From assembly GCA_965644265.1 (NCBI GenBank), contig OZ286462.1:32860001-32924000 (forward strand): a stretch of 64,000 nucleotides of DNA. Direction: 5' to 3'. This stretch comes from Glycera tridactyla (lineage: Eukaryota). Shown here piece after piece: positions 4,944 through 37,900 of this stretch (position 1 is the first letter of the stretch; every line of letters begins with the position of its first letter). The position numbers were made by a program, and so were the translations under genes. The notes under the pieces are model-generated. The model searched no databases. It had not been told where the DNA came from and saw nothing but the letters and a program-made list of their open reading frames with translations.

Positions 4944-7900
4944 CGAAGTGAACATTGATATCCAAATATTCGGAATGACAAACAATTTTTTACACACAGG
5001 TGTCACCGAGGCAACCACAGAGGGCGCCACTGCTGGTGAGTAGATAATTTTCAATGTTCCCCTACTCAAGCTCGTTAGATGCTTCTCATCTCCTATATTC
5101 ACCCATTTGGGTGGCGGGGTTTCAGGTAAATTGCAAGTTTTACAGCTTCATACGATGGTGGCTGCGATGGGTGCGATTATGGCAAGCAAAACCGCGACTT
5201 CATTCATAGATTGGCGTGGTGATTCATGAAACCTGCAAGCTGTTCAGGTGCAGCCAATAATCACTAAGAATTTGTAACATTCTGTGAATTCAGGTCCCCA
5301 TTCTTTTCTATTAGACTTGAGACAAAAGACACTTGTTTGGGATTTGGCTAACGTTTCCTCTGCCGGCTCAACTGAACAGCCAGCTGGTAATTTGGTGCGA
5401 AAACGAATGCACTACTATCATGCTAAGTGCATAACCCCTATGAAGTTTAATGGTCCATTATCACATCACGATGGAAAAAAAGCCGATAGCAAACCTCCGA
5501 ACTTGCCTAGAATGATTACAAAGAACAAATAAATTGTGTGAACAAAGACTAAGATCGTAATGTATTGGAATCTGATGAGTTTAGAGGAAATGAATTATTT
5601 GAATCTTGGCGAATTAATAGCATCGGGCGATGAATGGCTATGAATGTGCACATGCAGCTGACAGAAAAGGCATTCGACGTTTTCATCTCTGCACGTGAAG
5701 CAAATATATACGCTTCTCAGAGTGCGCGAATGACATTGCTAGCGTGGATATAATATGAGTGCAGTGTCAGGTGTCACTGAGGCAACTGTCGATGATTTGA
5801 CCACAAAAGAAGTCAGCGAAGGTGCGTTTGGGCTGATTGGCTTGGCATATCTCCACTCAAACCATCACCAACAGAATATGCTAATTATTTGCACTTTCCT
5901 GTCAGAAGACCTTGGGCGCACTGGCTTAGTCGTAGGAATTGGGAGAAAGTGGACCACCTCCAATGTTTCGAAGCAACATCTGCTTGGATTCAAAAATTAC
6001 ATTTTGGATCCAGCTGTAACTGTTCACATACAGCTGACGGAAAAGAGTGTTGGAGATTCACCTTTTCGACCTGGGCTGCATATGGACAGTCTTATCCAGT
6101 ATGCCAACATGATACATGCATGAAGAGAACCTGAAATGGACACATCCCATGCTCAGTGTGGATAAAGCAAATTCATTGCTGATCGAGAACCTCAGCTAAG
6201 TAGTTCCACAGCCAATTAACAATATCGTAAATATAGTGACTCAATAGAGGGATGGTATGTTGATATTTTTGTTTACCATCATTGTGCAGTGTCAGGTGTA
6301 ACTGAGGCAACAGTTGATGATTCGACCTCGAAAGGATTTAGTGAAGGTGAGTTTGGGCTGATTGGCTTGGTCTCTCTCCACCCTGCCATCATGAATAAGA
6401 TATAACATTCAGTTGCACTGTTCAGTGAGAAAGTCTGGAGAGCACTAGCTTAGCTAAAAAGATGGGGAAGTCAGACCACCTCTGATATTTTGAAGAAACA
6501 TTCGCTTGTCCTCAAAAATTGGATGTTGGATCTGTCTGTAAGTGTTCATATGCAGCTGAAAGTGAAGGGTGGAGATGTACCAGTTTGACTTGAGCTGCAT
6601 ATGAACAGTCCTGTCTGTAAGTGTTCATATGCAGCTGAAAGTAAAGGGTGGAGATGTACCAGTTTGACTTGAGCTGCATATGATCAGTCCTGCCGAGCAC
6701 ACCAATACTATTCATGCATCAGAAGAACCTGATTTAGGTACATCCTATGCTCAGTGTGGGCAAATCTATTTCATCGCTATTTGATAACACACGTTAGATA
6801 GATACAAACCAATGAACAATTCTGAATCTTTCGATAAAGTAGGGTAAAAATGGTCGCAGACATGGTTTTGGTATCATGACGTGTCATTACCATTCTTGCA
6901 CAAGTTTTTCACATGCTTTAGTGGTGCATGATTCATTATCATCATCATCAGATGTGCATCACTGATAATTGTCTCCTAATCTTTAAGGTTCTTGTCCAAA
7001 TCACTTTGACACATCATCCTTTTGACATATCATCTACAGGAAATTGATGCTTCACATACCATGCCTACTAATTCAATATTAGTGCACTATTAGCGTTTTT
7101 AGCGCACTATCATTATATTCACATCAGACAAATAGAAAAGAAATCCCTGAACTTATCTGCAACCAATTCAGATTTTATTAGAACACTCCTCACATTCCAA
7201 CAAAGGCATTGAGGAGTTTGCTGATTACTATCTGTGTAACTGCAATTAGTGTAGGCATCAGTCACATCGGCTTACCAGGCACTTGGTTACATGGTAGTGA
7301 GAAACAGGATCATGTGTGATAGGCTCAATGCATACCTATATCAAGATGCAAAAAGCGTGACATGATATGGTATCAGAGTGTCATGCCATACTCATACTAT
7401 TACATGGTGAGAGGGTGTTGATATTCTTCTTTACCATTATTGTGCAGTGTCAGGTGTCACTGAGGCAACTGTCGATGATTTGACCACAAAAGAAGTCAGC
7501 GAAGGTGAGTTTGGGCTGATTGGCTTGGCATATCTCCACTCATACCATCACCAACAGAATATGCTATTTATTTGCACTTTCCTGTCAGAAGACCTTGGGC
7601 GCACTGGCTTAGTCATAGGAATTGGGAAAAAGTGGACCACCTCCAATGTTTCGAAGCAACATCTGCTTGGATTCAAAAATCACATTTTGGATCCAGCTGT
7701 AACTGTTCACATACAGCTGACGGAAAAGAGTGTTGGAGATTCACCTTTTCGACCTGGCCTGCATATGGACAGTCTTATCCAGTATGCCAACATGACACAT
7801 CCCATGTTCAGTGTGGATAAAGCAAATTCATTGCTGATCGAGAACCACAGCTAAGTAATTCAACAGCCAATCAACAATATCGTAAATATAGTGACTCAAT

Positions 7901-13900: not shown

Positions 13901-16900
13901 TGGTATCAGAGTGTCATGCCATACTCATTCTATTACATGGTGAGAGGGTGTTGATATTCTTCTTTACCATTATTGTGCAGTGTCAGGTGTCACTGAGGCA
14001 ACTGTCGATGATTTGACCACAAAAGAAGTCAGCGAAGGTGAGTTTGGGCTGATTGGCTTGGCATATCTCCACTCATACCATCACCAACAGAATATGCTAT
14101 TTATTTGCACTTTCCTGTCAGAAGACCTTGGGCGCACTGGCTTAGTCATAGAAATTGGGAGAAAGTGGACCACCTCCAATGTTTCGAAGCAACATCTGCT
14201 TGGATTCAAAAATTACATTTTGGATCCAGCTGTAACTGTTCACATACAGCTGACGGAAAGCGTGTTGGAGATTCACCTTTTCGACCTGGGCTGCATATGG
14301 ACAGTCTTATCCAGTATGCCAACATAATACATGCATGAAGAGAACCTGAAATGGACACATCCCATGCTCAGTGTGGATAAAGCAAATTCATTGCTGATCG
14401 AGAACCTCAGCTAAGTAGTTCCACAGCCAATTAACAATATCGTAAATATAGTGACTCAATAGAGGGATGGTATGTTGATATTTTTGTTTACCATTATTGT
14501 GCAGTGTCAGGTGTAACTGAGGCAACAGTTGATGATTCGACCTCGAAAGGATTTAGTGAAGGTGAGTTTGGGCTGATTGGCTTGGTCTCTCTCCACCCTG
14601 CCATCATGAATAAGATATAACATTCAGTTGCACTGTTCAATGAGAAAGTCTGGAGAGCACTAGCTTAGCTAAAAAGATGGGGAAGTCAGACCACCTCTGA
14701 TATTTCGAAGAAACATTCGCTTGTCCTCAAAAATTGGATGTTGGATCTGTCTGTAAGTGTTCATATGCAGCTGAAAGTAAAGGGTGGAGATGTACCAGTT
14801 TGACTTGAGCTGCATATGAACAGCCCTGTCTGTAAGTGTTCATATGCAGCTGAAAGTAAAGGGTGGAGATGTACCAGTTTGACTTGAGCTGCATATGAAC
14901 AGTCCTGCCGAGCACACCAATACTATTCATGCATCATAAGAACCTGATTTAGGTACATCCTATGCTCAGTGTGGGCGAATCTATTTCATTGCTATTTGAT
15001 AACACACGTTAGATAGATACAAACCAATGAACAATTCTGAATCTTTCGATAAAGTAGGGTAAAAATGGTCGCAGACATGGTTTTGGTATCATGACGTGTC
15101 ATTACCATTCTTGCACAAGTTTTTCACATGCTTTAGTGGTGCATGATTCATTATCATCATCATCAGATGTGCATCACTGATAATTGTCTCCTAATCTTTA
15201 AGGTTCTTGTCCAAATCACTTTGACACATCATCCTTTTGACATATCATCTACAGGAAATTGATGCTTCACATACCATGCCTACTAATTCAATATTGGTGC
15301 ACTATTAGCGTTTTTAGCGCACTATCATTATATTCACATCAGACAAATAGAAAAGAAATCCCTGAACTTATCTGCAACCAATTCAGATTTTATTAGAACA
15401 CTCCTCACATTCCAACAAAGGCATTGAGGAGTTTGCTGATTACTATCAGTGTAACTGCAATTAGTGAAGGCATCAGTCACATCGGCTTACCAGGCACTTG
15501 GTTACATGGTAGTGAGAAACAGGATCATGTGTGATAGGCTCGATGCATACCTATATCAAGATGCAAAAAGCATGACATGATATGGTATCAGAGTGCCATG
15601 CCATACTCATACTATTACATGGTGAGAGGGTGTTGATATTCTTCTTTACCATTATTGTGCAGTGTCAGGTGTCACTGAGGCAACTGTCGATGATTTGACC
15701 ACAAAAGAAGTCAGCGAAGGTGAGTTTGGGCTGATTGGCTTGGCATATCTCCACTCATACCATCACCAACAGAATATGCTATTTATTTGCACTTTCCTGT
15801 CAGAAGACCTTGGCGCACTGGCTTAGTCATAGGAATTGGTAGAAAGTTGACCACCTCCAATGTTTCGAAGCAACATCTGCTTGGATTCAAAAATTACATT
15901 TTGGATCCAACTGTAACTGTTCACATACAGCTGACGGAAAAGAGTGTTGGAGATTCACCTTTTCGACCTGGCCTGCATATGGACAGTCTTATCCAGTATG
16001 CCAACATGATACATGCATGGAGAGGACCTGAAATGGACACATCCCATGTTCAGTGTGGATAAAGCAAATTCATTGCTGATCGAGAACCACAGCTAAGTAA
16101 TTCCACAGCCAATCAACAATATCGTAAATATAGTGACTCAATAGAGGGATGGTATGTTGATATTTGTGTTTACCATTATTGTGCAGTGTCAGGTGTAACT
16201 GAGGCAACAGTTGATGATTCGACCTCGAAAGGATTTAGTGAAGGTGAGTTTGGGCTGATTGGCTTGGTCTCTCTCCACCCTACCATCATGAATAAGATAT
16301 AACATTCAGTTGCACTGTTCAGTGAGAAAGTCTGGAGAGCACTAGCTTAGCTAAAAAGATGGGGAAGTCAGTCAGACCACCTCTGATATTTTGAGGCAAC
16401 GTTCGCTTGTCCTCAAAAGTTGGATGTTGGATCTGTCTGTAAGTGTTCATATGCAGCTGAAATTAAAGGGTGGAGATGTACCAGTTTGACTTGAGCTGCA
16501 TATGAACAGTCCTGTCTGTAAGTGTTCATATGCAGCTGGAAGTAAAGGGTGGAGATGTACCAGTTTGACTTGAGCTGCATATGAACAGTCCTGCCGAGCA
16601 CACCAATACTATTCATGCATCAGAAGAACCTGATTTAGGTACATCCTATGCTCAGTGTGGGCGAATCTATTTCATTGCTATTTGATAACACACGTTAGAT
16701 AGATACAAACCAATGAACAATTCTGAATCTTTCGATGAAGTAGGGTAAAAATGGTCGCAGACATGGTTTTGGTATCATGACGTGTCATTACCATTCTTGC
16801 ACAAGTTTTTCACATGCTTTAGTGGTGCATGATTCATTATCATCATCATCAGATGTGCATCACTGATAATTGTCTCCTAATCTTTAAGGTTCTTGTCCAA

Positions 16901-19900
16901 ATCACTTTGACACATCATCCTTTTGACATATCATCTACAGGAAATTGATGCTTCACATACCATGCCTACTAATTCAATATTAGTGCAATATCAGCGTTTT
17001 TAGCGCACTATCATTATATTCACATCAGACAAATAGAAAAGAAATCCCTGAACTTATCTGCAACCAATTCAGATTTTATTAGAACACTCCTCACATTTCA
17101 ACAAAGGCAAAGAGGAGTTTGCTGATTATTATCTGTGTAACTGCAATTAGTGAAGGCATCAGTCACATTGGCTTACCAGGCACTTGGTTACATGGTAGTG
17201 AGAAACAGGATCATGTGTGATAGGCTCGATGCATACCTATATCAAGATGCAAAAAGCGTGACATGATATGGTATCAGAGTGTCATGCCATACTCATTCTA
17301 TTACATGGTGAGAGGGTGTTGATATTCTTCTTTACCATTATTGTGCAGTGTCAGGTGTCACTGAGGCAACTGTCGATGATTTGACCACAAAAGAAGTCAG
17401 CGAAGGTGAGTTTGGGCTGATTGGCTTGGCATATCTCCACTCATACCATCACCAACAGAATATGCTATTTATTTGCACTTTCCTGTCAGAAGACCTTGGG
17501 CGCACTGGCTTAGTCATAGGAATTGGGAAAAAGTGGACCACCTCCAATGTTTCGAAGCAACATCTGCTTGGATTCAAAAATTACATTTTGGATCCAGCTG
17601 TAACTGTTCACATACAGCTGACGGAAAAGAGTAATGGAGATTCACCTTTTCGACCTGGGCTGCATATGAACAGTCTTATCCAGTATGCCAACATGACACA
17701 TCCCATGTTCAGTGTGGATAAAGCAAATTCATTGCTGATCAAGAACCACAGCTAAGTAATTCCACAGCCAATCAACAATATCGTAAATATAGTGACTCAA
17801 TAGAGGGATGGTATGTTGATATTTGTGTTTACCATTATTGTGCAGTGTCAGGTGTAACTGAGGCAACAGTCGATGATTCGACCTCGAAAGGATTTAGTGA
17901 AGGTGAGTTTGGGCTGATTGGCTTGGTCTCTCTCCACCCTGCCATCATGAATAAGATATAACATTCAGTTGCACTGTTCAGTGAGAAAGTCTGGAGAGCA
18001 CTAGCTTAGCTAAAAAGATGGTGAAGTCAGTCAGACCACCTCTGATATTTTAAGGCAACGTTCGCTTGTCCTCAAAAATTGGATGTTGGATCTGTCTGTA
18101 AGTGTTCATATGCAGCTGAAAGTAAAGGGTGGAGATGTACCAGTTTGACTTGAGCTGCATATGAACAGTCCTACCGAGCACACCAATACTATACATGCAT
18201 CAGAAGAACCTGATTAAGGTACATCCCATACTCAGTGTGGGCGAATCTATTTAATTGCTATTTGATAACACACGTTAGATATATACAAACCAATGAATGA
18301 TTCTGAATCTTTTGATCAAGTAGGGAAAAAATGGTCGCAGACATGGTTTTGGTATCATGACGTGTCATTACCATTCTTGCACAAGTTTTTCACATGCTTT
18401 AGTGGTGCATGATTCATTATCATCATCATCAGATGTGCGTCACTGATAATTGTCTCCTAATCTTAAAGGTTCTTGTCCAAATCACTTTGACACATCATCC
18501 TTTTGACATATCATCTACAGGAAATTGATGCTTCACAAACCATGCCTTCTAATTCAATATTAGTGCACTATTAGCGTTTTTAGCGCACTATCATTATATT
18601 CACATCAGACAAATAGAAAAGAAATCCCTGAACTTATCTGCAACCAATTCAGATTTTATTAGAACACTCCTCACATTCCAACAAAGGCATTGAGGAGTTT
18701 GCTGATTACTATCTGTGTAACTGCAATTAGTGAAGGCATCAGTCACATCGGCTTACCAGGCACTTGGTTACATGGTAGTGAGAAACAGGATCATGTGTGA
18801 TAGGCTCGATGCATACCTATATCAAGATGCAGAAAGCGTGACATGATATGGTATCAGAGTGTCATGCCATACTCATACTATTACATGGTGAGAGGGTGTT
18901 GATATTCTTCTTTACCATTATTGTGCAGTGTCAGGTGTCACTGAGGCAACTGTCGATGATTTGACCACAAAAGAAGTCAGCGAAGGTGAGTTTGGGCTGA
19001 TTGGCTTGGCATATCTCCACTCATACCATCACCAACAGAATATGCTATTTATTTGCACTTTCCTGTCAGAAGACCTTGGGCGCACTGGCTTAGTCATAGG
19101 AATTGGGAAAAAGTGGACCACCTCCAATGTCTCGAAGCAACATCTGCTTGGATTCAAAAATTACATTTTGGATCCAACTGTAACTGTTCACATACAGCTG
19201 ACGGAAAAGAGTGTTGGAGATTCACCTTTTCGACCTGGCAAGCATATGGACAGTCTTATCCAGTATGCCAACATGATACATGCATGAAGAGAACCTGAAA
19301 TGGACACATCCCATGCTCAGTGTGGATAAAGCAAATTCATTGCTGATCGAGAACCACAGCTAAGTAATTCCACAGCCAATCAACAATATCGTAAATATAG
19401 TGACTCAATAGAGGGATGGTATGTTGATATTTGTGTTTACCATTATTGTGCAGTGTCAGGTGTAACTGAGGCAACAGTTGATGATTCGACCTCGAAAGGA
19501 TTTAGTGAAGGTGAGTTTGGGCTGATTGGCTTGGTCTCTCTCCACCCTGCCATCATGAATAAGATATAACATTCAGTTGCACTGTTCAGTGAGAAAGTCT
19601 GGAGAGCACTAGCTTAGCTAAAAAGATGGGGAAGTCAGTCAGACCACCTCTGATATTTTGAGGCAACGTTCGCTTGTCCTCAAAAATTGGATGTTGGATC
19701 TGTCTGTAAGTGTTCATATGCAGCTGAAAGTAAAGGGTGGAGATGTACCAGTTTGACTTGAGCTGCATATGAACAGTCCTGTCTGTAAGTGTTTATATGC
19801 AGCTGGAAGTAAAGGGTGGAGATGTACCAGTTTGACTTGAGCTGCATATGAACAGTCCTGCCGAGCACACCAATACTATTCATGCATCAGAAGAACCTGA

Positions 19901-22900
19901 TTTAGGTACATCCTATGCTCAGTGTGGGCGAATCTATTTCATTGCTATTTGATAACACACGTTAGATAGATACAAACCAATGAACAATTCTGAATCTTTC
20001 GATAAAGTAGGGTAAAAATGGTCGCAGACATGGTTTTGGTATCATGACGTGTCATTACCATTCTTGCACAAGTTTTTCACATGCTTTAGTGGTGCATGAT
20101 TCATTATCATCATCATCAGATGTGCATCACTGATAATTGTCTCCTAATCTTTAAGGTTCTTGTCCAAATCACTTTGACACATCATCCTTTTGACATATCA
20201 TCTACAGGAAATTGATGCTTCACATACCATGCCTACTAATTCAATATTAGTGCACTATCAGCGTTTTTAGCGCACTATCATTATATTCACATCAGACAAA
20301 TAGAAAAGAAATCCCTGAACTTATCTGCAACCAATTCAGATTTTATTAGAACACTCCTCACATTTCAACAAAGGCAAAGAGGAGTTTGCTGATTATTATC
20401 TGTGTAACTGCAATTAGTGAAGGCATCAGTCACATTGGCTTACCAGGCACTTGGTTACATGGTAGTGAGAAACAGGATCATGTGTGATAGGCTCGATGCA
20501 TACCTATATCAAGATGCAAAAAGCGTGACATGATATGGTATCAGAGTGTCATGCCATACTCATTCTATTACATGGTGAGAGGGTGTTGATATTCTTCTTT
20601 ACCATTATTGTGCAGTGTCAGGTGTCACTGAGGCAACTGTCGATGATTTGACCACAAAAGAAGTCAGCGAAGGTGAGTTTGGGCTGATTGGCTTGGCATA
20701 TCTCCACTCATACCATCACCAACAGAATATGCTATTTATTTGCACTTTCCTGTCAGAAGACCTTGGGCGCACTGGCTTAGTCATAGAAATTGGGAGAAAG
20801 TGGACCACCTCCAATGTTTCGAAGCAACATCTGCTTGGATTCAAAAATTACATTTTGGATCCAGCTGTAACTGTTCACATACAGCTGACGGAAAGCGTGT
20901 TGGAGATTCACCTTTTCGACCTGGGCTGCATATGGACAGTCTTATCCAGTATGCCAACATAATACATGCATGAAGAGAACCTGAAATGGACACATCCCAT
21001 GCTCAGTGTGGATAAAGCAAATTCATTGCTGATCGAGAACCTCAGCTAAGTAGTTCCACAGCCAATTAACAATATCGTAAATATAGTGACTCAATAGAGG
21101 GATGGTATGTTGATATTTTTGTTTACCATTATTGTGCAGTGTCAGGTGTAACTGAGGCAACAGTTGATGATTCGACCTCGAAAGGATTTAGTGAAGGTGA
21201 GTTTGGGCTGATTGGCTTGGTCTCTCTCCACCCTGCCATCATGAATAAGATATAACATTCAGTTGCACTGTTCAATGAGAAAGTCTGGAGAGCACTAGCT
21301 TAGCTAAAAAGATGGGGAAGTCAGACCACCTCTGATATTTCGAAGAAACATTCGCTTGTCCTCAAAAATTGGATGTTGGATCTGTCTGTAAGTGTTCATA
21401 TGCAGCTGAAAGTAAAGGGTGGAGATGTACCAGTTTGACTTGAGCTGCATATGAACAGTCCTGTCTGTAAGTGTTCATATGCAGCTGGAAGTAAAGGGTG
21501 GAGATGTACCAGTTTGACTTGAGCTGCATATGAACAGTCCTGCCGAGCACACCAATACTATTCATGCATCAGAAGAACCTGATTTAGGTACATCCTATGC
21601 TCAGTGTGGGCGAATCTATTTCATTGCTATTTGATAACACACGTTAGATAGATACAAACCAATGAATGATTCTGAATCTTTCAATCAAGTAGGAAAAAAA
21701 TGGTGCCAGACATGGTTTTGGTATCATGACGTGTCATTACCATTCTTGCACAAGTTTTTCACATGCTTTAGTGGTGCATGATTCATTATCATCATCATCA
21801 GATGTGCATCACTGATAATTGTCTCCTAATCTTTAGGGTTCTTGTCCAAATCAATTTGACGCATCATCTTTTTGACATATCATCTACAGGAGATTGATGC
21901 TTCACATACCATGCCTACTAATTCAATATTAGTGCACTATCAGCGTTTGTAGCGCACTACCATCATGTTCACATCAGATAAATAGAAGAGGAATCCCTGA
22001 ACTCATCTGCAACCAATTTAGATTTTATTAGAACACTCCTCACATTTCAACAAAGGCAGAGAGGAGTTTGCTGATTATGATCTGTGTGACTGCAATTAGT
22101 GAAGGCATCAGTCACATTGGCTTACCAGGCACTTGGTTACATGGTAGTGAGAAACAGGATCATGTGTGATAGGCTCGATGCATACCTATATCAAGATGCA
22201 AAAAGCGTGACATGATATGGTATCAGAGTGTCATGCCATACTCATATTATTACATTGTGAGAGGGTGTTGATATTCTTCTTTACCATTATTGTGCAGTGT
22301 CAGGTGTCACTGAGGCAACTGTCGATGATTTGACCACAAAAGAAGTCAGCGAAGGTGAGTTTTGGCTGATTGGCTTGGCATATCTCCACTCATACCATCA
22401 CCAACAGAATATGCTATTTATTTGCACTTTCCTGTCAGAAGACCTTGGGCGCACTGGCTTAGCCATAGGAATTGGGAGAAAGTGGACCACCTCCAATGTT
22501 TCGAAGCAACATCTGCTTGGATTCAAAAATTACATTTTGGATCCAGCTGTAACTGTTCACATACAGCTGACGGAAAAGAGTGTTGGAGATTCACCTTTTC
22601 GACCTGGGCTGCATATGAACAGTCTTATCCAGTATGCCAACATAATACATGCATGAAGAGAACCTGAAATGGACACATCCCATGCTAAGTGTGGATAAAG
22701 CAAATTCATTGCTGATCGAGAACCTCAGCTAAGTAGTTTCACAGCCAATTAACAATATCGTAAATATAGTGACTCAATAGAGGGATGGTATGTTGATATT
22801 TGTGTTTACCATTATTGTGCAGTGTCAGGTGTAACTGAGGCAACAGTTGATGATTCGACCTCGAAAGGATTTAGTGAAGGTGAGTTTGGGCTGATTGGCT

Positions 22901-25900
22901 TGGTCTCTCTCCACCCTGCCATCATGAATAAGATATAACATTCAGTTGCACTGTTCAGCGAGAAAGTCTGGAGAGCACTAGCTTAGCTAAAAAGATGGGG
23001 AAGTCAGACCACCTCCGATATTTCAAAGCAACATTCGCTTGTCCTCAAAAATTGGATGTTGGATCTGTCTGTAAGTGTTCATATGCAGCTGAAAGTAAAG
23101 GGTGGAGATGTAGCAGTTTGACTTGAGCTGCATATGAACAGTCCTGCCGAGCACGCCAATACTATACATGCATCAGAAGAACCTGATTAAGGTACATCCC
23201 ATGCTCAATGTGGGCGAATCTATTTCATTGCTATTTGATGACACCAGTTAGATAGATACAAACCAATGAATGATTCTGAATCTTTCGATCAAGTAGGGAA
23301 AAAATGGTCCCAGACATGGTTTTGGTATCATGACGTGTCATTACCATTCTTGCACAAGTTTTTCACATGCTTTAGTGGTGCATGATTCATCATCATCATC
23401 ATCAGATGTGCGTCACTCATAATTGTCTCCTAATCTCCAAGGTTCTTGTCCAAATCACTTCGACACATCATCTTTTTGACATAACATCTACAGGAGATTG
23501 ATGCTTCACATACCATGCCTACTAATTCAATATTAGTGCACTATCAGCGTTTGTAGCGCACTATCATCATATTCACATCAGATAAATAGAAGAGGAATCC
23601 CTGAACTCATCTGCAATCAATTTAGATTTTATTAGAACACTCCTCACATTTCAACAAAGGCAGTGATGAGTTTGCAGATTATTATCTGTAAAACTGCAAT
23701 TAGTGAAGGCATCAGTCACATCAGCTTACCAGGCACTTGGTTACATGGTAGTGAGAAACAGGATCATGTGTGATAGGCTCAATGCATGCCTATATCGAGA
23801 TCCAAAAAGCGTGACATGATATGGTATCAGAGTGTCATGCCATATTCATACTATCTATTACATGGTGAGAGGGTGTTGATATTCTTCTTTACCATTATTG
23901 TGCAGTGTCAGGTGTCACTGAGGCAACTGTCGATGATTTGACCACAAAAGAAGTCAGCGAAGGTGAGTTTGGGCTGATTGGCATGGCATATCTCCACTCA
24001 TACACCATCACCAACAGAATATGCTATTTATTTGCACTTTCCTGTCAGAAGACCTTGGGCGCACTGGCTTAGTCATAGGTATTGGGAGAAAGTGGATCAC
24101 CTCCAATGTTTCGAAGCAACATCTGCTTGGAATCAAAAATTACATTTTGGACCCAGCTGTAACTGTTCACATACAGCTGACGGAAAAGAGTGATGGAGAT
24201 TCACCTTTTCGACCTGGGCTGCATATGGACAGTCTTATCCAGTATGCCAACATGATACATGCATGGAGAGAACCTGAAATGGACACATCCACTGCCAAGT
24301 GTGGATAAAGCAAATTCATTGCTGATCGAGAACCTCAGCTAAGTAGTTTCACAGCCAATTAACAATATCGTAAATATAGTGACTCAATAGAGGGATGGTA
24401 TGTTGATATTTGTGTTTACCATTATTGTGCAGTGTCAGGTGTAACTGAGGCAACAGTTGATGATTCGACCTCGGAAGGATTTAGTGAAGGTGAGTTTGGG
24501 CTGATTGGCTTGGTCTCTCTCCACCCTGCCATCATGAATAAGATATAACATTCAGTTGCACTGTTCAGTGAGAAAGTCTGGAGAGCACTAGCTTAGCTAA
24601 AAAGATGGGGAAGTCAGACCACCTCTGATATTTTGAAGCAACATTCGCTTGTCCTCAAAAATTGGATGTTGGATCTGTCTGTAAGTGTTCATATGCAGCT
24701 GAAAGTAAAGGGTGGAGATGTAGCAGTTTGACTTGAGCTGCATATGAACAGTCCTGCCGAGCACGCCAATACTATACATGCATCAGAAGAACCTGATTAA
24801 GGTACATCCCATGCTCAATGTGGGCGAATCTATTTCATTGCTATTTGATAACACCAGTTAGATAGATACAAACCAATGAACAATTCTGAATCTTTCGATC
24901 AAGTAGGGAAAAAATGGTCCCAGACATGGTTTTGGTATCATGATGTGTCATTACCATTCTTGCACAAGTTTTTCACATGCTTTAGTGGTGCATGATTCAT
25001 TATCATCATCATCAGATGTGCGTCACTGATAATTGTCTCTTAATCTCTAAGGTTCTTGTCCAAATCACTTTGACACATCATCTTTTTGACATAACATCTA
25101 CAGGAGATTGATGCTTCACATACCATGCCTACTAATTCAATATTAGTGCACTATCAGCGTTTGTAGCGCACTATCATCATATTCACATCAGATAAATAGA
25201 AGAGGAATCGCTGAACTGATCTGCAACCAATTTAGATTTTATTAGAACACTCCTCACATTTCAACAAAGGCAGTGATGAGTTTGCAGATTATTATCTGTA
25301 AAACTGCAATTAGTGAAGGCATCAGTCACATCAGCTTACCAGGCACTCGGTTACATGGTAGTGAGAAACAGGATCATGTGTGATAGGCTCGATGCATGCC
25401 TATAGCGAGATCCAAAAAGCGTGACATGATATGGTATCAGAGTGTCATGCCATATTCATACTATCTATTACATGGTGAGAGGGTGTTGATATTCTTCTTT
25501 ACCATTATTGTGCAGTGTCAGGTGTCACTGAGGCAACTGACGATGATTTGACCACAAAAGAAGTCAGCGAAGGTGAGTTTTGGCTGATTGGCTTGGCATA
25601 TCTCCACTCATACACCATCACCAACCGAATATGCTATTTATTTGCACTTTCCTGTCAGAAGACCTTGGGCGCACTGGCTTAGCCATAGGAATTGGGAGAA
25701 AGTGGACCACCTCCAATGTTTCGAAGCAACATTTGCTTGGATTCAAAAATTACATTTTGGATCCAGCTGTAACTGTTCACATACAGCTGACGGAAAAGAG
25801 TGATGGAGATTCACCTTTTCGACCTGGGCTGCATATGGACAGTCTTATCCAGTATGCCAACATGATACATGCATGAAGAGAACCTGAAATAGACACATCC

Positions 25901-28900
25901 CATGCTAAGTGTGGATAAAGCAAATTCATTGCTGATCGAGAACCTCAGCTAAGTAGTTTCACAGCCAATTAACAATATCGTAAATATAGTGACTCAATAG
26001 AGGGATGGTATGTTGATATTTGTGTTTACCATTATTGTGCAGTGTCAGGTGTAACTGAGGCAACAGTTGATGATTCGACCTCGAAAGGATTTAGTGAAGG
26101 TGAGTTTGGGCTGATTGGCTTGGTCTCTCTCCACCCTGCCATCATGAATAAGATATAACATTCAGTTGCACTGTTCAGTGAGAAAGTCTGGAGAGCACTA
26201 GCTTAGCTGAAAAGATGGGGAAGTCAGACCACCTCTGATATTTTGAAGAAACATTCGCTTGTCCTCAAAAATTGGATGTTGGATCTGTCTGTAAGTGTTC
26301 ATATGCAGCTGAAAGTAAAGGGTGGAGATGTAGCAGTTTGACTTGAGCTGCATATGAACAGTCCTGCCGAGCACGCCAATACTATACATGCATCAGAAGA
26401 ACCTGATTAAGGTACATCCCATGCTCAATGTGGGCGAATCTATTTCATTGCTATTTGATAACACCAGTTAGATAGATACAAACCAATGAACAATTCTGAA
26501 TCTTTCGATCAAGTAGGGAAAAAATGGTCCCAGACATGGTTTTGGTATCATGACGTGTCATTACCATTCTTGCACAAGTTTTTCACATGCTTTAGTGGTG
26601 CATGATTCATTATCATCATCATCAGATGTGCGTCACTGATAATTGTCTCCTAATCTCTAAGGTTCTTGTCCAAATCACTTCGACACATCATCTTTTTGAC
26701 ATAACATCTACAGGAGATTGATGCTTCACATACCATGCCTACTAATTCAATATTAGTGCACTATCAGCGTTTGTAGCGCACTATCATCATATTCACATCA
26801 GATAAATAGAAGAGGAATCGCTGAACTGATCTGCAACCAATTTAGATTTTATTAGAACACTCCTCACATTTCAACAGAGGCAGTGATGAGTTTGCAGATT
26901 ATTATCTGTAAAACTGCAATTAGTGAAGGCATCAGTCACATCAGCTTACCAGGCACTCGGTTACATGGTAGTGAGAAACAGGATCATGTGTGATAGGCTC
27001 GATGCATGCCTATAGCGAGATCCAAAAAGCGTGACATGATATGGTATCAGAGTGTCATGCCATATTCATACTATCTATTACATGGTGAGAGGGTGTTGAT
27101 ATTCTTCTTTACCATTATTGTGCAGTGTCAGGTGTCACTGAGGCAACTGTCGATGATTTGACCACAGTAGAAGTCAGCGAAGGTGAGTTTTGGCTGATTG
27201 GCTTGGCATATCTCCACTCATACCATCACCAACAGAATATGCTATTTATTTGCACTTTCCTGTCAGAAGACCTAGGGCGCACTGGCTTAGTCATAGGAAT
27301 TGGGAGAAAGTGGACCACCTCCAATGTTTCGAAGCAACATCTGCTTGGATTCAAAAATTACATTTTGGATCCAGCTGTAACTGTTCACATACAGCTGACG
27401 GAAAAGAGTGATGGAGATTCACCTTTTCGACCTGGGCTGCATATGGACAGTCTTATCCAGTATGCCAACATGATACATGCATGGAGAGGACCTGAAATGG
27501 ACACATCCCATGCTAAGTGTGGATAAAGCAAATTCATTGCTGATCGAGAACCTCAGCTAAGTAGTTTCACAGCCAATCAACAATATCGTAAATATAGTGA
27601 CTCAATGGAGGGATGGTATGTTGATATTTGTGTTTACCATTATTGTGCAGTGTCAGGTGTAACTGAGGCAACAGTTGATGATTCGACCTCGAAAGGATTT
27701 AGTGAAGGTGAGTTTGGGCTGATTGGCTTGGTCTCTCTCCACCCTGCCATCATAATTAAGATATAACATTCAGTTGCACTGTTCAGTGAGAAAGTCTGGA
27801 GAGCACTAGCTTAGCTAAAAAGATGGGGAAGTCAGACCACCTCTGATATTTTGAAGCAACATTCGCTTGTCCTCAAAAATTGGATGTTGGATCTGTCTGT
27901 ATGTGTTCATATGCAGCTGAAAGTAAAGGGTGGAGATGTAGCAGTTTGACTTGAGCTGCATATGAACAGTCCTGCCGAGCACGCCAATACTATACATGCA
28001 TCAGAAGAACCTGATTAAGGTACATCCCATGCTCAATATGGGCGAATCTATTCCATTGCTATTTGATAACACCAGTTAGATAGATACAAACCGATGAATG
28101 ATTATGAATCTTTCGATCAAGTAGGGAAAAAATGGTCCCAGACATGGTTTTGGTATCATGACGTGTCATTACCATTCTTGCACAAGTTTTTCACATGCTT
28201 TAGTGGTGCATGATTCATTATCATCATCATCAGATGTGCGTCACTGATAATTGTCTCCTAATCTTTAGGGTTCTTGTCCAAATCAATTTGACGCATCATC
28301 TTTTTGACATATCATCTACAGGAGATTGATGCTTCACATACCATGCCTACTAATTCAATATTAGTGCACTATCAGCGTTTGTAGCGCACTATCATCATAT
28401 TCACATCAGATAAATAGAAGAGGAATCCCTGAACTCATCTGCAACCAATTTAGATTTTATTAGAACACTCCTCACATTTCAACAAAGGCAGTGATGAGTT
28501 TGTAGATTATTATCTGTAAAACTGCAATTAGTGAAGGCATCAGTCACATCAGCTTACCAGGCACTCGGTTACATGGTAGTGAGAAACAGGATCATGTGTG
28601 ATAGGCTCGATGCATGCCTATATCGAGATCCAAAAAGCGTGACATAATATGGTATCAGAGTGTCATGCCAAATTCATACTATCTATTACATTGTGAGAGG
28701 GTGTTGATATTCTTCTTTACCATTATTGTGCAGTGTCAGGTGTCACTGAGGCAACTGTCGATGATTTGACCACAAAAGAAGTCAGCGAAGGTGAGTTTTG
28801 GCTGATTGGCTTGGCATATCTCCACTCATACCATCACCAACAGAATATGCTATTTATTTGCACTTTCCTGTCAGAAGACCTTGGGCGCACTGGCTTAGTC

Positions 28901-31900
28901 ATAGGAATTGAGAAAAAGTAGACCACCTCCAATGTTTCGAAGCAACATTTGCTTGGATTCGAAAATTACATTTTGGATCCAGCTGTAACTGTTCACATAC
29001 AGCTGACGGAAAAGAGTGATGGAGATTCACCTTTTCGACCTGGGCTGCATATGGACAGTCTTATCCAGTATGCCAACATGATACATGCATGGAGAGGACC
29101 TGAAATGGACACATCCCATGCTCAGTGTGGATAAAGCAAATTTATTGCTGATCGAGAACCTCAGCTAAGTAGTTCCACAGCCAATTAACAATATCGTAAA
29201 TATAGTGACTCAATGGAGGGATGGTATGTTGATATTTGTGTTTACCATTATTGTGCAGTGTCAGGTGTAACTGAGGCAACAGTTGATGATTCGACCTCGA
29301 AAGGATTTAGTGAAGGTGATTTTTTGCTGATTGGCTTGGTCTCTCTCCACCCTGCCATCATGAATAAGATATAACATTTAGTTGCACTGTTCAGTGAGAA
29401 AGTCTGGAGAGCACTAGCTTAGCTAAAGAGATGGTGAAGTCAGACCACCTCTGATATTTTGAAGAAACATTCGCTTGTCCTCAAAAATCGGATGTTGGAT
29501 CTGTCTGTAAGTGTTCATATGCAGCTGAAAGTAAAGGGTGGAGATGTACCAGTTTGACTTGAGCTGCATATGAACAGTCCTGCCGAGCACGCCAATACTA
29601 TTCATGCATCAGAAGAACCTGATTAAGGTACATTCTATGCTCAGTGTGGGCGAATCTATTTCATTGCTATTTGATAACACCAGTTAGATAGATACAAACC
29701 AATGAACAATTCTGAATCTTTCGATAAAGTAGGGAAAATGGTCGCAGACATGGTTTTGGTATCATGACGTGTTATTACCATTCTTGCACAAGTTTTTCAC
29801 ATGCTTTAGTGGTGCATGATTCATTATCATCATCATCATCAGATGTGCATCACTGATAATTGTCTCCTAATCTTTAAGGTTCTTGTCCAAATCACTTTGA
29901 CACATCATCCTTTTGACATATCATCTACAGGAGATTGATGCTTCACATACCATGCCTACTAATTCAATATTAGTGCACTATCAGCGTTTGTAGCACACTA
30001 TCATTATATCCACATCAGACAAATAGAAAATGAATTCCTGAACCCATCTGCAACCAATTCAGATTTTAGTAGAACACTCCTCTCATTTCAACAAAGGCAT
30101 TGAGGAGTTTGCTGATTATTATCTGTGTAACTGCAATTAGTGAAGGCATCAGTCACATTGGCTTACCATGCACTTGGTTACATGGTAGTGAGAAACAGGA
30201 TCATGTGTGATAGGCTCGATGCATACCTTTATCAAGATGCAAAAAGCATGACATGATATGGTATCAGAGTGTCATGCGGTACTCATACTATTACATGGTG
30301 AGAGGGTGTTGATATTCTTCTTTACCATTATTGTGCAGTGTCAGGTGTCACTGAGGCAACTGTCGATGATTTGACCACAGTAGAAGTCAGCGAAGGTGAG
30401 TTTTGGCTGATTGGCTTGGCATATCTCCACTCATACCATCACCAACAGAATATGCTATTTATTTGCACTTTCCTGTCAGAAGACCTTGGGCGCACTGGCT
30501 TAGCCATAGGAATTGGGAAAAAGTAGACCACCTCAAATATTTCGAAGCAACATCTGCTTGAATTAAAAAATTACATTTTGGATCCAGCTGTAACTGTTCA
30601 CATACAGCTGACGGAAAAGAGTGATGGAGATTCACCTTTTCGACCTGGGCTGCATATGGACAGTCTTATCCAGTATGCCAACATGATACATGCATGAAGA
30701 GAACCTGAAATGGACACATCCCATGCTCAGTGTGGATAAATCAAATTCATTGCTGATCGAGAACCTCAGCTAAGTAGTTCCACAGCCAATTAACAATATC
30801 GTAAATATAGTGACTCAATGGAGGGATGGTATGTTGATATTTGTGTTTACCATTATTGTGCAGTGTCAGGTGTAACTGAGGCAACAGTTGATGATTCGAC
30901 CTCGAAAGGATTTAGTGAAGGTGAGTTTGGGCTGATTGGCTTGGTCTCTCTCCACCCTGCCATCATAATTAAGATATAACATTCAGTTGCACTGTTCAGT
31001 GAGAAAGTCTGGAGAGCACTAGCTTAGCTAAAAAGATGGGGAAGTCAGACCACCTCTGATATTTTGAAGCAACATTCACTTGTCCTCAAAAATCGGATGT
31101 TGGATCTGTCTGTAAGTGTTCATATGCAGCTGACGGAAAAGAGTGATGGAGATTCACCTTTTCGAATTGACACAGCAATACTATACATGCATCAGAAGAA
31201 CCTGATTTAGGTACATCCCATGCTCAGTGTGGTCGAATCTATTTCATTGCTATTTGATCACACCAATTAGCTAGATACAAACCGATGATCAATACTGAAT
31301 AAATAGAATACGGTCAGAAAAATTATATCCTAGGTATCCGTCAGGCTCGTATCTCCATGCCAATCCGTATGAAAAGCTATGATAAGACAATGGTTTTTGC
31401 CCCTGTGTATCAACAATGATGCAAACATATATGCCCCCTCCTGGCTTACTCCTTCAAAGCGTTCTCCACTCATCAATTCTCTCTCTCTTCATATTCCAAC
31501 CAATCCTTATCTTCACAAGTACATTCATAACCATATATCTATTCATCCATGTCATTCTATGATTTAATGTTTTGGTACCATGTCTTGTCATTACCACTAT
31601 TGATTTATTTTTTCACATGCTTCTTAGTTGTGCATGATTCATCATCCTCATCATTTGTTCATCATTGACAATCATTAGCTGATCAGTACTCTTCTCCTCC
31701 TGGTCATTCTGTCCGATCATCTTCCCATTGAATCAAGCAGAGGAGATTGATAGCTTGGATGACATGCCCACTGATCTAATACTAGCTGACTATCAGCTTT
31801 TTCAGCAAACTGTTATCATAGGAATTATTTGACAAATTTGATGGTTTGTACACAACCTCTTTCTGATTACGTTACGATTATTCTTCACATTTCATGAGGG

Positions 31901-34900
31901 ACACTCTCTTCAGGCAGAGATGTGCTTCGCAAGTCACAGACCAAAATATCGCAAACATCAGTAATCTGAATCCATTGAAGAGATTGCAGTCAACTGGTTA
32001 CATGGTAGCTGGAGACTACATAACATGTGATGGGCTATGTGCATACCATCCTGGTTATTTATTCTTCAGTCCCTCAATGGAACACCCAAGAGAGAATGAT
32101 GAGATTGATTCCGGTTTCTGTTAGAATTATTTCTTGAATATCATGTGGGGCATTCCCTTCGAAAAGTGAGAGGGATGTGCTTCACAGCTTGCAATACAGA
32201 GAAATGAGGAGGTCCAGAGATCACTGACTTCTGATATTTCAAAGCAGCTGCTAGATGTCTCTGGATAGCACAAGCGTAGCTCTGATCGGGCTCATATCAT
32301 CTCAGATATATCGAATCCCCAATTTTAGTCTCGACTGCATATAACCCGCCCCATTGGCCACGACATTATCGTCTAAGCATTAGGAGAGCCTGAAACAACT
32401 ACGGTCAATATGTATGCAATGACTACCCTCGGTCGCATATTCTCTTTCAATGTATCTGTCTCCTCATGGGACGCCTCCTTCCAAACAGGGTCGAGTGTCA
32501 CAGTTCTATACGAAACATCCTCTCCAGAGAGAGATGGGAGGGGGGGTTCACCATGTGTCGCTCAAAGGATCACGAACTACAATTTCAAATGGTTGGAGCA
32601 ATCACTGCATTTGCTCAAGACGTTTGCCGAAATGAGTCACCTGATGGCATAGTACCACATCACATTCCTGGATGCCTGCGTCGGGATTTATATAATGGTG
32701 ACTAGGAGTCCTATGGTTTCAGCTATGATCTTACAGCTTACCGACAGCTTTACTCGGAAATGGCATATTGATTTGATTTCATTTTCCATTCTTTTGCAGT
32801 GTCAGGAGTGACAGAAGAACCAGTGGATTCAACCCCAGTAGGAGTGAGTGAAGGTGAGTGTTGGCTGATTGGCCTTGTATTGGTCCACCATGCTATCATC
32901 GATGGGATATCACATCAGGTCACACTGTTTGATTGTGAAGCTTACCTCCGCAATGCATCCAGCAGTAGGAGCTAGAGCGATAAGATCACATGCGAATCAT
33001 GAGAGCGTCAATCTCAGTCCTGATCAGTCACTTCGGTTATCTAGTCGTCGGTTATCTAGTCAATGGGAACTTCGTGGAATGCAGATATTGAGTGAATCGT
33101 GTAAATTCATCAATCTCATGGGACTGTGCCATTGAGCGCAAATTAGTCATGTTCGGAAAATAAATTCCTGCTGATTTCGTCGATTAGCCATGATGTGATT
33201 TGTTTCCGTCAACTGCATCTTCAGGCACACCTGATTGAGCTCAAAATGCTTATTGCTTCGATAAATACATAGAAATCCCATTCACATCTTTGCTTGTGAA
33301 CACGGTCGACATATGAGCACAAAGTATGTATGAAGCTTTCATTCACATATATCATCAAGATCGTTTCAATATCCTTGTACTTCTCGAAGAAATTGAATTC
33401 ACTGATGATGAGAAAAAAAAGGTTTGCAAGAATGGCTGTCTACATTGTTCATCAATCCTATGAAAAGGGTTGCAGTTACTCTGTGATTATAATATTTGCA
33501 CGATTTCATGTCAGATGGAAGCACATAAATCTCAGAATTTCAAAAAAGGATCTGTGATCAGGGTCGGTAAAATTACATGAGTTGCATAATCGTATCTTAA
33601 GCTATGTATGTGGTCACCCATGATATTACCAATTGCCATATAAACTACAACCCTATTAGGCATGCTTATGCCGAGTATGCGTGAAAGGATTATGAAACAA
33701 GTACATTCCATGAGTAGTGTGATCGCAAATATTTCAATATATTGAACAGTCACTTCGACGAGGCAGTCACAAACATATTGATGAATAAAGTCTTCATGAC
33801 ATGTAGATCCTTGTGCCCCTGACTCGCTCCGCCTGAGGGTCCACTACTGATCTGAGTCTTCTTTTCTATCTATCCTGGCTATATCCCTGCCATTCGCAAT
33901 TGCATGGAAATAAATTGTGGGTGATTTTCTTCATGCTAAGCTACGGGTTATGACAGCAATATCCTGTCTTTATCATGTGGTACCATCATGTGGACTAGTA
34001 TCTCACGTGCTTTTCAGAGGGATGAGATTTGCAGTCCCCATCATCTGGACATTACTAATGATCGACTACTAATTATGAATCTGGGCATTCTGATTATTGT
34101 GACTTTTATATTCCTCGCATAAAACAAAGAGAATTATATGATGTTGGGGCATCAGCTATTCTATCCAATTTTGATTCTTTTGAACTGTAGCATGAGCATT
34201 TCAAAATTGAGAACTCAAACCAATTCTATTGGTTGAGATAATTTCTACTTCTCTAGACATCCCCTGTCCCTTCAGAGAGGAATGGGCGTAAATACTCGCG
34301 GTTCGAGAACACTCAAACTGAGTGGATATCTCATATATATTTGTATATATAGCTAGATACCGTTGAAACATTGGGTGGATTCCATACATATCTGCCTCAT
34401 GGTGGAGATGATAATCGCTTGGTAGAGGAGTCAATGCAAACAATTGTTATGGTTTCGCAGTGAAATATATAGCATACAGAATATTCCACATGGAAATAGA
34501 ATACTGAACCCCATCTTCATCATTATTGTGCAGTTTCTGGTGTGACAGAATCAGAAGATGATGACGATTCAACGACAGCAGCTGTCACTGAAGGTGAGAT
34601 TGGCTGTTTTGCTGGATGCTTGTTCACTCCTACAATCAGCATTGAAATAGCATATTTCTCTGCACCAACTAGCAAGAAGCCCTGGACATATCGCGGTGAA
34701 CCAGATCGATCTGATATCGAGAACTCTCCACTCACCTGTATTCAAAAAAAAAGATCAGATATCGAGTTTTAAATTTCCATATGCAGCAAACAGTGAATGA
34801 TTAGGGAGGAGTCTTGCACGAACAGTTCTTACAAGCATGCTATACCATGTATGCATGACATGAACATAAAATAAGTACGTTCATTGGGAATGTGATGACC

Positions 34901-37900
34901 TCAATACTGATCGACCCCTCGACTGAGTGGTCATAGACCAATTAACAAATTAAGTCTTAATGAAAAATAATGATCTCGCAAGAATGCCATAATGTGATGA
35001 TCCTTGTTTCCCCAACTCGCTCCACTGGTGGGTTCATAAGTAGTCGGGGTTTCTTTCTTTATCTATCCTAGCCATAGCATTGCCATTTGTTTCTGCATGC
35101 ACATCAGTTGTATGGAGTTTGGGATCATTTGCCCACGGCTATGAGGGCGATGACCCTTCCTCCTAATACCGAATAACAAGCTCCAAATTTTGCCAGTATG
35201 CATTTTGATAATTTTGGACTTTTTCTTGCTCGGAGAAACAAAAAAGAATTGATGGCTTTGGCCTCATGCCTACTGATATGATTGTCTTGTTTTCCACATA
35301 TCTGTATGGAACTACCCCCTCTGAATAGAAATATGGTCAACTACTGCCATGGAATCGTGGACAATATTGACTCAAATCGTGTGACTTGTTCGAGGAGTCA
35401 CTGCAAAGATTTGATAAAGTTTTGTGGTACGAGATACAGCACACAAAATGTATTACCAAAAAGTTGTACGCTGATTCTTGTGTTCATCATTATTGTGCAG
35501 TATCTGGTGCGACTGATCCAGAAGGTGATGACGATTTGACAACAGCAGCAGTCACTGAAGGTGAGATTCGAGTGATTTGCTGCATACTTCTTCATTCCTA
35601 CTATCGGCAGTAAAATAGCACATATCACGGCACTGACGAGCGAAATATTCTGGTTATATCCGGATCCGCGATCGGGGTACTCACTAATCGTTTCTAAAAG
35701 CATTTGTGTAGATCCCAAAATCCGATCAGATATCTGGTCATGATATTCCATATGCATCAAATGATGAGCCACTCTGACCGAGTCGTCACAAACAATTTAA
35801 TGATTAAGGTCTTCATGGCAAGTAGTCATTTTGTAAGTTTGCCACCCTCCCCCTGACTCACTCCACACCACAAAGTCGGGTTCCTTTCTTATATCCTTGC
35901 CATATTACTGCCAATCCCAACTATGTGTATAAAGATAGTGTGTGGTCTTGCTCTGGTTTGTGTATATTGTTTTTTCAATTTTACATTTTGGGTTTTTCCT
36001 GCATCTAAGCTTGTCATATTGTTTCCAATCCCTAATTCGCATGTATAAATAGTGTGGGGCTTTAGGATACTTTGCTCTGGGTAATGGAAGTAGCTACTTG
36101 GTATATTGTTTTCCACTCACTTGTTTTTATAATATTGACAGGTTTGTCGTTAGCCCATCAGTAAAGTGAGAATTATAATATTCATCATAAAGGTATTACT
36201 AGCAATCACCTCCTAATTATGATTGTATGCATTGTTATAATCTGGATCTGCTCTTCCCCAGAGAAACCAAGAAAATTGTTGGTGATTGGGTATCCGGTTC
36301 TTTATCATTAATATTCTCCCTTGGTCAAATTCTTCTCTGTGTAGTGACATTTAAAATTCATATGGGCATACTGACTATAAGCCTCCAACCAAGACTGTGT
36401 GCATCATTGGTCATTTTCATCTTTCTCTTCAACGAAAACACGAGGAAATCGATCACGTGGGCCTCATGCCTACTGATATGATGTCGAGACATCGGTCATC
36501 CTATCGAATTTTATTCACAGAAGCATGCAGAATTTCGATAAAAAATGTGTACCAGTTATCTTGTTCGACACCTCTTGAAGAGGTATATGTGTAACTACTT
36601 GCAGTTCATGGAATCACAGACAATTGAAAATTCAGGCAAAAAAAGACCACATGTTTGTGGATATGTAGCTTGACACTATTTTGTATTTGGTGGAGTCCAT
36701 GCATATCTCCATCATGACTGAAATAATAGTAACTTGACAGAGGGATCAATGCAAATACCTGATATGCATTCAGAGCAAAGGATATAGAATCCAAAATTAT
36801 GACATGGGAATGGTATGCTGACTTTTGTTTTCAACGTTATTGTACAGTGACTGGTGCGAATGATTCAGAAGATGATGACGATTTGACAACAGTGGCAATC
36901 ACTGAAGGTGAGATTCGACTGATTCGATGTATACTTGGTCATGCATACTATCAGTACCGAACTAGCATATATCACCTCACCGACTAGCGAGATGTTATAG
37001 TCATATCTGGCTCAACCAGAAACATCGGAGAACGAGATATCCACCAAATTCTCAATGATCTGATTACTTCAAAATCAGATCGGATTTGTGGGTATCATAT
37101 CCCATATGCACTGAACAGTGAGCATTTAGGGAGCATTTTTGCCACTGATCAGCCACTTTGACAGAATAGTCACAAACCAGTCAATAACCAGGGTCCCCAT
37201 GGCAAGTAGTGACTTTGTAAGTCCGTCATAACATGATGATCCTTATCCCCCAACTCACTCCACATAAGGGCTCACTACTAACTTGTCATTTGTTTTTTTT
37301 ATCCTCCCAATATTGCTGTCAATCCCTAGTGCATGCATATGAATGTGTGGTTTGAGGACACTTTGCTGTGGGTTATGGAGGTGGGAACTCGATATATTGT
37401 TTTTCAATCTTCTCAGTGAAATGACAATTTTTGAACGCATTATAAGGGTATTACGTACAATCAGCTCCTAATTACGAGTGTATGCATTGAGAAAATGTTG
37501 GTCTCTAACTTCCCCGAAGAAACAAACAAAATCGTAGTTGACTCATCTATACCAAATATACCAGTTATCCTGTTGGGATTGATTTTCACATGTCCGAATG
37601 GGACACCTCCTTTCGAAGAGGAATATGCGTATTCACTTGCAGTTCATGAAACCACAGACAATAGGAATTGAATCTAGGTAAAGGCAATATATTTGTGAAT
37701 ATGTAGCTGGACACCATTTTATATTTGGTGGACTCCATGCATATCTCCATCATGACTGAAATAAAAGTTGGAGGAATCAATGCAAATACCTGACATGCAT
37801 TCAGAGCAAAGGATATAGAATTCAAAATTATGACATGGGAATGGTATGCTGACTTCTGTTTTCAACGTTATTGTACATTGACTGGTGCGACTGATTCAGG

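Follow-up and report, generated by a model that had tools for sequence, protein, structure and literature searches.

The 64,000-nucleotide (nt) stretch of Glycera tridactyla DNA analyzed here (assembly GCA_965644265.1, contig OZ286462.1, positions 32,860,001 to 32,924,000 of the forward strand; hereafter, the window, in whose positions all features are given) contains a 25-kb array that superficially resembles satellite DNA and that is probably a tandemly amplified two-exon cassette in a large plus-strand protein-coding gene, where it would encode a stalk. The sequence itself establishes the layout of the array, its frame, the traces of selection, and its homogenization, and we infer the transcription, splicing, glycosylation, and membrane topology of the gene and its product, as well as any variation in isoforms.

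Anatomy of the tandem array

The window has a G+C content of ~41%, is eukaryotic-looking, and is rich in microsatellites. From ~5.8 to 31 kb, nearly every 20-mer is repeated ~10 times, with favored distances of 1580, 1608–1610, and 1682–1687 nt. A scan for exons, defined as AG followed by 57 nt and GT and open in phase 1-1, gave exactly 32 members of one family at 5765–30920, in which 16 of type A, with the peptide VSGVTEATVDDLTTKEVSE, strictly alternate with 16 of type B, with the peptide VSGVTEATVDDSTSKGFSE. The features of the array are as follows.

5765..30920, plus strand: tandem exon–intron array of 16 units of ~1.6 kb, each consisting of an A exon, a short intron, a B exon, and a long intron
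5765..5821, plus strand: first type A micro-exon, 57 nt, phase 1-1
Starts of the other 15 A exons (57 nt each): 7448, 9028, 10714, 12294, 13981, 15663, 17349, 18929, 20616, 22298, 23906, 25516, 27126, 28734, 30339
6290..6346, plus strand: first type B micro-exon, 57 nt, phase 1-1
Starts of the other 15 B exons (57 nt each): 7945, 9553, 11211, 12819, 14505, 16187, 17846, 19454, 21140, 22823, 24433, 26043, 27651, 29259, 30864
10495..15048, plus strand: higher-order duplication of 4.55 kb, with its second copy at 17130–21683, 6635 nt downstream, at 13 mismatches (99.7% identity)

The short intron (A to B) is 440–470 nt and the long intron (B to A) is 1023–1105 nt in length, with A-to-B and B-to-A spacings in the array of 497–527 nt and 1080–1162 nt, respectively, and the coding share of the array is 1824/25156 nt (7.3%). 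The first-pass annotation had described 32 symmetric 57-nt exons that together encode 608 amino acids (aa) and make up about 7% of the array, and its count, lengths, phases, and coding share were all reproduced by the scan. The A exons all have a CAG acceptor and the donor AAG/GTGAGT, except for the first copy (GTGCGT), and in three copies the peptide is altered (V to D at 25516 and K to V at 27126 and 30339). Among the B exons, there are a synonymous change at 17846 and a K to E change at 24433, and the donor of the exon at 29259 is GTGATT.

The 15 complete A-to-A units are 95–100% identical in pairwise comparison and fall into three length classes (1580, 1605–1610, and 1682–1687 nt), which arise from a few intron indels, one of them being a 79-nt hairpin-forming unit that explains one of the classes. 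By relatedness, they form subgroups along the array (units 1–10 versus units 11–14). Units 4 and 8 share 99.8% identity, and units 5 and 9 share 100%. The duplication of the 4.55-kb block indicates that both single units and higher-order blocks have been added as the array grew. The identity of units 5 and 9 and the recurrence of a 4.55-kb block with only 13 mismatches, a configuration error-prone for assemblers, would also be expected if the array had been over-expanded or mis-joined from a shorter repeat in the assembly. Such an artefact is nevertheless highly improbable, because the units differ in a structured way, by 0–5% and in three length classes, their relatedness is graded along the array, the duplicated block is itself not identical, and no runs of N interrupt the array.

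The 79-nt unit, which has 18-nt inverted-repeat arms (TGTTCATATGCAGCTGAA and TTGAGCTGCATATGAACA), is present in one or two copies per B-to-A intron (e.g., 13065–13225). The idea that this conserved intronic hairpin is a functional RNA was not supported, as only the B introns of the array have a strong form of the 18-nt inverted repeat, which is weak in the A introns and absent from the diverged introns.

Evidence for the exon status of the 57-nt segments

Within the array, nucleotide diversity was 0.0058 in exons (114 columns) and 0.033 in introns, representing a difference of ~6-fold, and segregating sites accounted for 5/114 positions in exons and 182/1490 in introns (Fisher p 0.009). The earlier statement that the introns are nearly as conserved between units as the exons holds, therefore, only roughly: mean pairwise identity is 96.7% in introns versus 99.4% in exons, but the gap is significant by the same test. 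No gap column was found in the exons, whereas there were 125 in the introns, where 10 indel events occurred with none in the exons. Intron sequence within 50 nt of the array exons, on either side, likewise varied less than that at −100 to −51.

The comparison between the two exon types reaches further back. The A and B exons are 82.5% identical, with proportions of nonsynonymous and synonymous differences (pN and pS) of 0.09 and 0.42, respectively, resulting in a pN/pS of ~0.2, and the A/B pair is evidently old, the identity of the A and B introns being 68%. Across eight exon types, including those of the diverged relatives described below, pN/pS was 0.52 in the proposed frame and ~1.5 in both other frames, which contain stops in every copy. 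Variation was found at 16/20 third codon positions compared with 17/40 first and second positions (p 0.007). Taken together, the exon/intron diversity, the in-frame pN/pS, the codon-position bias, and the phase shared with the flanking diverged exons support well the view, already proposed in the first-pass annotation, that the 57-nt segments are real coding exons, and we consider this very probable.

An opposing account would be that the array is a satellite silent in transcription or splicing, that the mature mRNA skips the whole block, which would have been amplified from one ancestral exon pair with its introns, and that the open frames reflect only its youth and homogenization. The units are 95–100% identical and the block is duplicated at 99.7%, leaving little time for decay; a poor pyrimidine tract precedes the first array exon, whose donor is GTGCGT; and no matching protein was present in the libraries searched. 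This account is, however, quite unlikely on several grounds. Inside the array, significantly less variation is seen in the exons and the splice signals next to them than in the rest of the intron, and the exons are free of indels. The A/B pair, although old, as judged by its introns, has kept a pN/pS of ~0.2. Moreover, both splice sites are intact in 32/32 array exons, whereas a single-copy relative outside the array, at 37878, has visibly lost its acceptor, and decay is therefore detectable at this locus where it occurs.

The open reading frame (ORF) that reads through exon A into the intron (7447–7854 and equivalents, extending 115–135 codons into the intron) was also considered as coding and was rejected. 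Of its 16 copies, 5 are cut to 54–62 codons, and its variable sites show no preference among the three codon positions (17/13/11). The homologous ORF that reads through exon B always ends after 38 codons, and no Pfam or protein match was obtained for the exon A read-through.

Diverged relatives and splice signals

The array is flanked by seven older single-copy relatives, which have preserved the peptide and its phase, both splice sites (donor and acceptor), and a motif resembling a branch point. They are listed here with the d4 copy at 37878.

5000..5035, plus strand: upstream related exon, 36 nt, phase 1-1, peptide GVTEATTEGATA; its start is homologous to an acceptor lying 6 nt downstream (+6) in the array exons
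32800..32853, plus strand: diverged repeat exon d1, 54 nt, phase 1-1
34534..34593, plus strand: diverged repeat exon d2, 60 nt, phase 1-1
35501..35560, plus strand: diverged repeat exon d3, 60 nt, phase 1-1
36848..36907, plus strand: diverged repeat exon d4, 60 nt, phase 1-1
37878..37937, plus strand: copy of d4, probably a dead exon, with the acceptor AG changed to AT; absent from the results of the AG/GT scan
38716..38775, plus strand: diverged repeat exon d6, 60 nt, phase 1-1
39911..39961, plus strand: diverged repeat exon d7, 51 nt, phase 1-1; with AA in place of the ancestral acceptor, the +6 homologue would be used

The d4 copy at 37878 is a recent duplicate in which the frame is still open. 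When the 32 array exons and the seven relatives are conceptually spliced, the 39 exons give 735 aa with no stop.

Alignment of the introns of the seven diverged relatives with the array is limited to two short flanks, and homology is accordingly confined to the exon, ~40 nt upstream, and ~20 nt downstream (MAFFT suggested up to 30–60 nt). In the upstream flank, CAG is preceded by a pyrimidine tract and, near −28, by a CTGAY/TTGAT motif resembling a branch point, and the downstream flank contains GTGAGT followed by a CTGATTGG-like element. The donor AAG/GTGAGT, which matches the U1 consensus at 9/9 positions, is present in 32/39 exons. The CTGATTGG-like element lies at about +10 to +19 after the donor and is retained where the introns are otherwise unalignable (e.g., 12360–12369, 32863–32872, and 39971–39980); it may act as an intronic splicing element.

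All 39 exons are symmetric, and changes in copy number and exon skipping are therefore both frame-neutral. The claim of the first-pass annotation that the length of the stalk could change in frame by unit number or by skipping is, in this arithmetical sense, true. The first-pass annotation went further and proposed a splice-tunable ruler, in which cells would adjust how tall the stalk is by including differing numbers of exons, in the way that muscle uses the PEVK region of titin. Any subset of the phase 1-1 exons would remain in frame; the flanking intron is conserved in the old copies, including the CTGATTGG-like element, and conserved flanking intron is typical of regulated cassette exons; and the near-identical competing splice sites make the choice between donors and acceptors ambiguous. 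There are also precedents, in that the repeat number is variable in the transcripts of SmPoMuc, a mucin of Schistosoma mansoni (PMC2576457), and the length of titin PEVK is set by splicing (PMC6469411). Against such regulated isoform variation, which we regard as rather unlikely, the 9/9 match of the donors to U1 in 32/39 exons, together with the short introns (440–1105 nt), favors constitutive inclusion, and the core splice signals explain the conserved flanks in large part.

Properties of the predicted peptide

The array encodes 32 × 19 = 608 aa with no stop, in which Ser and Thr amount to 34%, Asp and Glu to 24%, and Lys to 5%. It contains no Pro, no Cys, and no N-x-S/T sequon, and the whole 735-aa sequence has only three Pro residues, of which d1 contributes two and d3 one. 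The repeat chain is of low complexity and strongly acidic, and on this composition it should be extended and disordered.

With regard to known classes of glycosylated protein, the array has tandem repeats with high Ser and Thr content (32 × 19 aa, 34%), as is expected of a mucin Pro/Thr/Ser (PTS) domain. There is, in addition, one Ser-Gly per array exon (32/32), in the acidic context E-V-S-G-V-T-E, and acidic residues near Ser-Gly constitute the loose consensus for glycosaminoglycan attachment; in sequence, the repeat thus agrees with what is expected of a proteoglycan attachment region. The chain thus offers many candidates for O-glycosylation, along with 32 predicted glycosaminoglycan sites that satisfy this loose consensus.

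All 32 array exons start with TGTCAG/G (e.g., 7448–7453), so that a second in-frame AG is present 6 nt downstream of the acceptor. Use of this +6 acceptor would drop Val-Ser, including the Ser of Ser-Gly.

Gene context upstream and downstream

Downstream of the repeat exons, the following candidate exons and ORFs were recognized.

41933..42040, plus strand: putative first non-repeat exon after the stalk, with a frame compatible with phase 1 entry and with predicted boundaries
50613..50813, plus strand: ORF with an EGF-like end (C-x5-G-x2-C), a hydrophobic, predicted transmembrane (TM) stretch, and a short tail; interrupted by a run of N
56384..56737, plus strand: second, paralogous ORF with an EGF-like end and a predicted TM stretch, as part of a duplicated C-terminal cassette

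The hydrophobic stretches of the ORFs at 50613 and 56384 are ~25–30 residues in length, each a clear predicted TM helix followed by a short tail, and the Pfam matches of the former were weak and to single-pass membrane proteins only. The neighbor of the latter, an ORF at 55829–56005, gave a Pfam EGF match with an E of 0.026, below the cut-off, and an EGF-type spacing, C-x-C-x5-G-x2-C, is readable across 44253/45251. Motifs of the form G-S-T-[IV]-V, reminiscent of the SEA cleavage site, are present in the ORFs at 48033–48251 and 55239–55430. There are thus two paralogous sets of ORFs, each with a G-S-T-[IV]-V piece, an EGF-like piece, and a TM piece, in a region interrupted by N runs. This arrangement suggests a duplicated C-terminal cassette, which could provide either alternative 3′ ends or the end of a second gene.

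Upstream, an ORF at 2871–3160 encodes ~96 aa, is single-exon-like, and contains several Cys residues and N-x-S/T sequons. It gave no Pfam match and, over 2886–3161, no usable ESM Atlas match, and its AlphaFold prediction without an alignment, with a pLDDT (predicted local distance difference test score) of 39, was unusable. Because it ends in phase 2, this ORF cannot join the exon at 5000 directly, and at least one unrecognized exon would have to lie before 5000.

Further repeats were observed in the window. The presumed C-terminal introns hold long imperfect (ACCT)n and (CTAC)n microsatellites (42093–42377 and 45362–45975), and a direct repeat with a period of ~768 nt, with duplicated ORFs (59852 and 60620) and AC-rich microsatellites, is present at 59100–60980 and is unrelated to the array.

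Proposed model and its weighing

We propose that, upon transcription of the gene, the 39 exons would be spliced, mostly constitutively in the array, into ~735 aa of acidic, Ser/Thr-rich repeats of 17–20 aa. The product would be an extended, heavily glycosylated spacer carrying O-glycans and/or glycosaminoglycan chains, positioned between N-terminal Cys-containing modules and a C-terminal EGF-like part with a TM anchor, and a role as the stalk of a protein anchored in the membrane is plausible for it. In this model, the array is expanded, contracted, and homogenized through unequal crossing-over and gene conversion, and purifying selection preserves the exons, the branch point, the acceptor, and the donor.

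Several observations weigh against this model. The Pro-rich repeats expected of a mucin PTS domain were not found, and the absence of Pro is unusual for mucin domains. The description of the array in the first-pass annotation as a mucin/proteoglycan stalk can, therefore, be retained in part: the acidic, Ser/Thr-rich sequence, in which each repeat has a single Ser-Gly, agrees with a glycosylated stalk, but, lacking Pro, it is not a classical PTS mucin repeat. As to selection, very recent homogenization alone would leave all copies open, and the test within the array is based on few sites. The gene model is incomplete at 3160–5000 and after 42040, and the presence of SEA and EGF was not confirmed by Pfam for the candidate exons scored singly, because each exon is too short alone.

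Database searches provided no matching protein. An 18-position HMMER profile of the repeat gave 0 matches among 1.84 billion representative proteins, which, for such a short profile, is weak evidence, and word-based protein searches with the exon A read-through ORF and with the 42-aa spliced A-B peptide were blank. The protein collections searched were mainly prokaryotic, viral, or metagenomic, and this genome or its relatives may be absent from them, so that the blanks say little. They are also compatible with annotation missing such exons, a point made in the first-pass annotation.

Implications

If the exons are expressed, ~25 kb of DNA that repeat-maskers would discard codes for over 600 residues of a protein at the cell surface, and genes of this kind would be systematically truncated in, or missing from, the gene sets of this genome. 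The locus would also offer a clean natural system for studying how the spliceosome pairs sites among dozens of identical ones, how concerted evolution and purifying selection act jointly on exon–intron cassettes, and how the length of an ectodomain varies by copy number versus splicing. Its main relevance may thus be for annotation and as a model for the splicing and concerted evolution of identical cassettes. A much broader proposal would be that extracellular stalks are built here, as a rule, from homogenized micro-exon cassettes, with splicing and copy number setting the height of glycocalyx proteins in the manner of titin PEVK, and with the +6 acceptor optionally removing the Ser of Ser-Gly; we look upon this generalization as speculative and unlikely to hold.

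Comparison with known systems

The predicted protein can be compared, first, with the vertebrate membrane mucins MUC3, MUC12, MUC13, and MUC17, which end in SEA-EGF-TM and have a glycosylated tandem-repeat ectodomain, a juxtamembrane module, EGF-like motifs, and one TM helix, with Pro-rich repeats in one large exon, and with the CS1 region of aggrecan, which has acidic 19-aa Ser-Gly repeats with copy-number polymorphism, again in one large exon. Unlike these, the present gene has one repeat per 51–60-nt exon and an array with no Pro, and the likeness is one of description only.

A close resemblance in gene design is that to SmPoMuc, in which the mucin repeat is a 27-bp exon within a ~1-kb genomic repeat of up to ~20 copies, with introns >94% identical, under concerted evolution and hard to assemble (PMC2576457). 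The present array likewise has one micro-exon per ~1-kb repeat (here, 0.5–1.16 kb per exon) and introns homogenized to >90%, but its exons are of 57 bp, encoding 19 aa, instead of 27 bp, encoding 9 aa, and alternate as an A/B pair in place of a single exon type. SmPoMuc proteins are also small, secreted members of a multigene family, whereas the gene considered here is giant and apparently has EGF-like and TM exons. Because a search of the whole window against Rfam gave no family, there is, therefore, no intron ribozyme like the hammerhead of SmPoMuc. The likeness is best understood as an analogy of design, as set by repeat length and composition (9 versus 19 aa), and not as family membership.

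The PEVK region of titin comprises >100 short (~76 nt), repetitive exons that encode a disordered acidic chain, have undergone segmental duplications of exon blocks, and are missed by gene predictors, with the chain length being set by differential splicing (PMC6469411). The present exons are similarly short, repetitive, and frame-symmetric (39 exons of 36–60 nt, phase 1-1). Titin is, in contrast, an intracellular, Pro-rich muscle spring, and its introns are not homogenized to 95–100%, whereas an extracellular Ser/Thr-rich stalk is predicted here. The micro-exon genes (MEGs) of schistosomes have symmetric micro-exons of 3–81 bp, the skipping of which keeps the frame (bioRxiv 10.1101/2023.06.21.545858, PMC4015677), but their products are small and secreted, and their exons are not tandem copies with homogenized introns. 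DMBT1 has a homogenized exon–intron array with Ser/Thr-rich spacers in separate exons, and its protein length is changed by the germline copy number of SRCR/SID units (PMC5435793). Unlike in the present case, the DMBT1 unit holds a folded SRCR domain, of which the spacer is a minor accompaniment.

The first-pass annotation had implied that the organization of this array is unique, which is an overstatement, given that SmPoMuc has the same design (PMC2576457) and titin PEVK is an array of short exons tuned by splicing (PMC6469411). By analogy with these systems and DMBT1, which are close analogues, the design is not new in kind, although no sign of homology to any of the families compared was seen. 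What appears to be distinctive is the combination of a two-exon A/B unit, 57-nt exons, a Pro-free acidic repeat with Ser-Gly, and a giant gene that apparently ends in EGF-like and TM exons. The value of the present finding would, hence, lie in extending a known design to a predicted membrane-anchored, EGF-containing protein outside the flatworms, rather than in a new principle.

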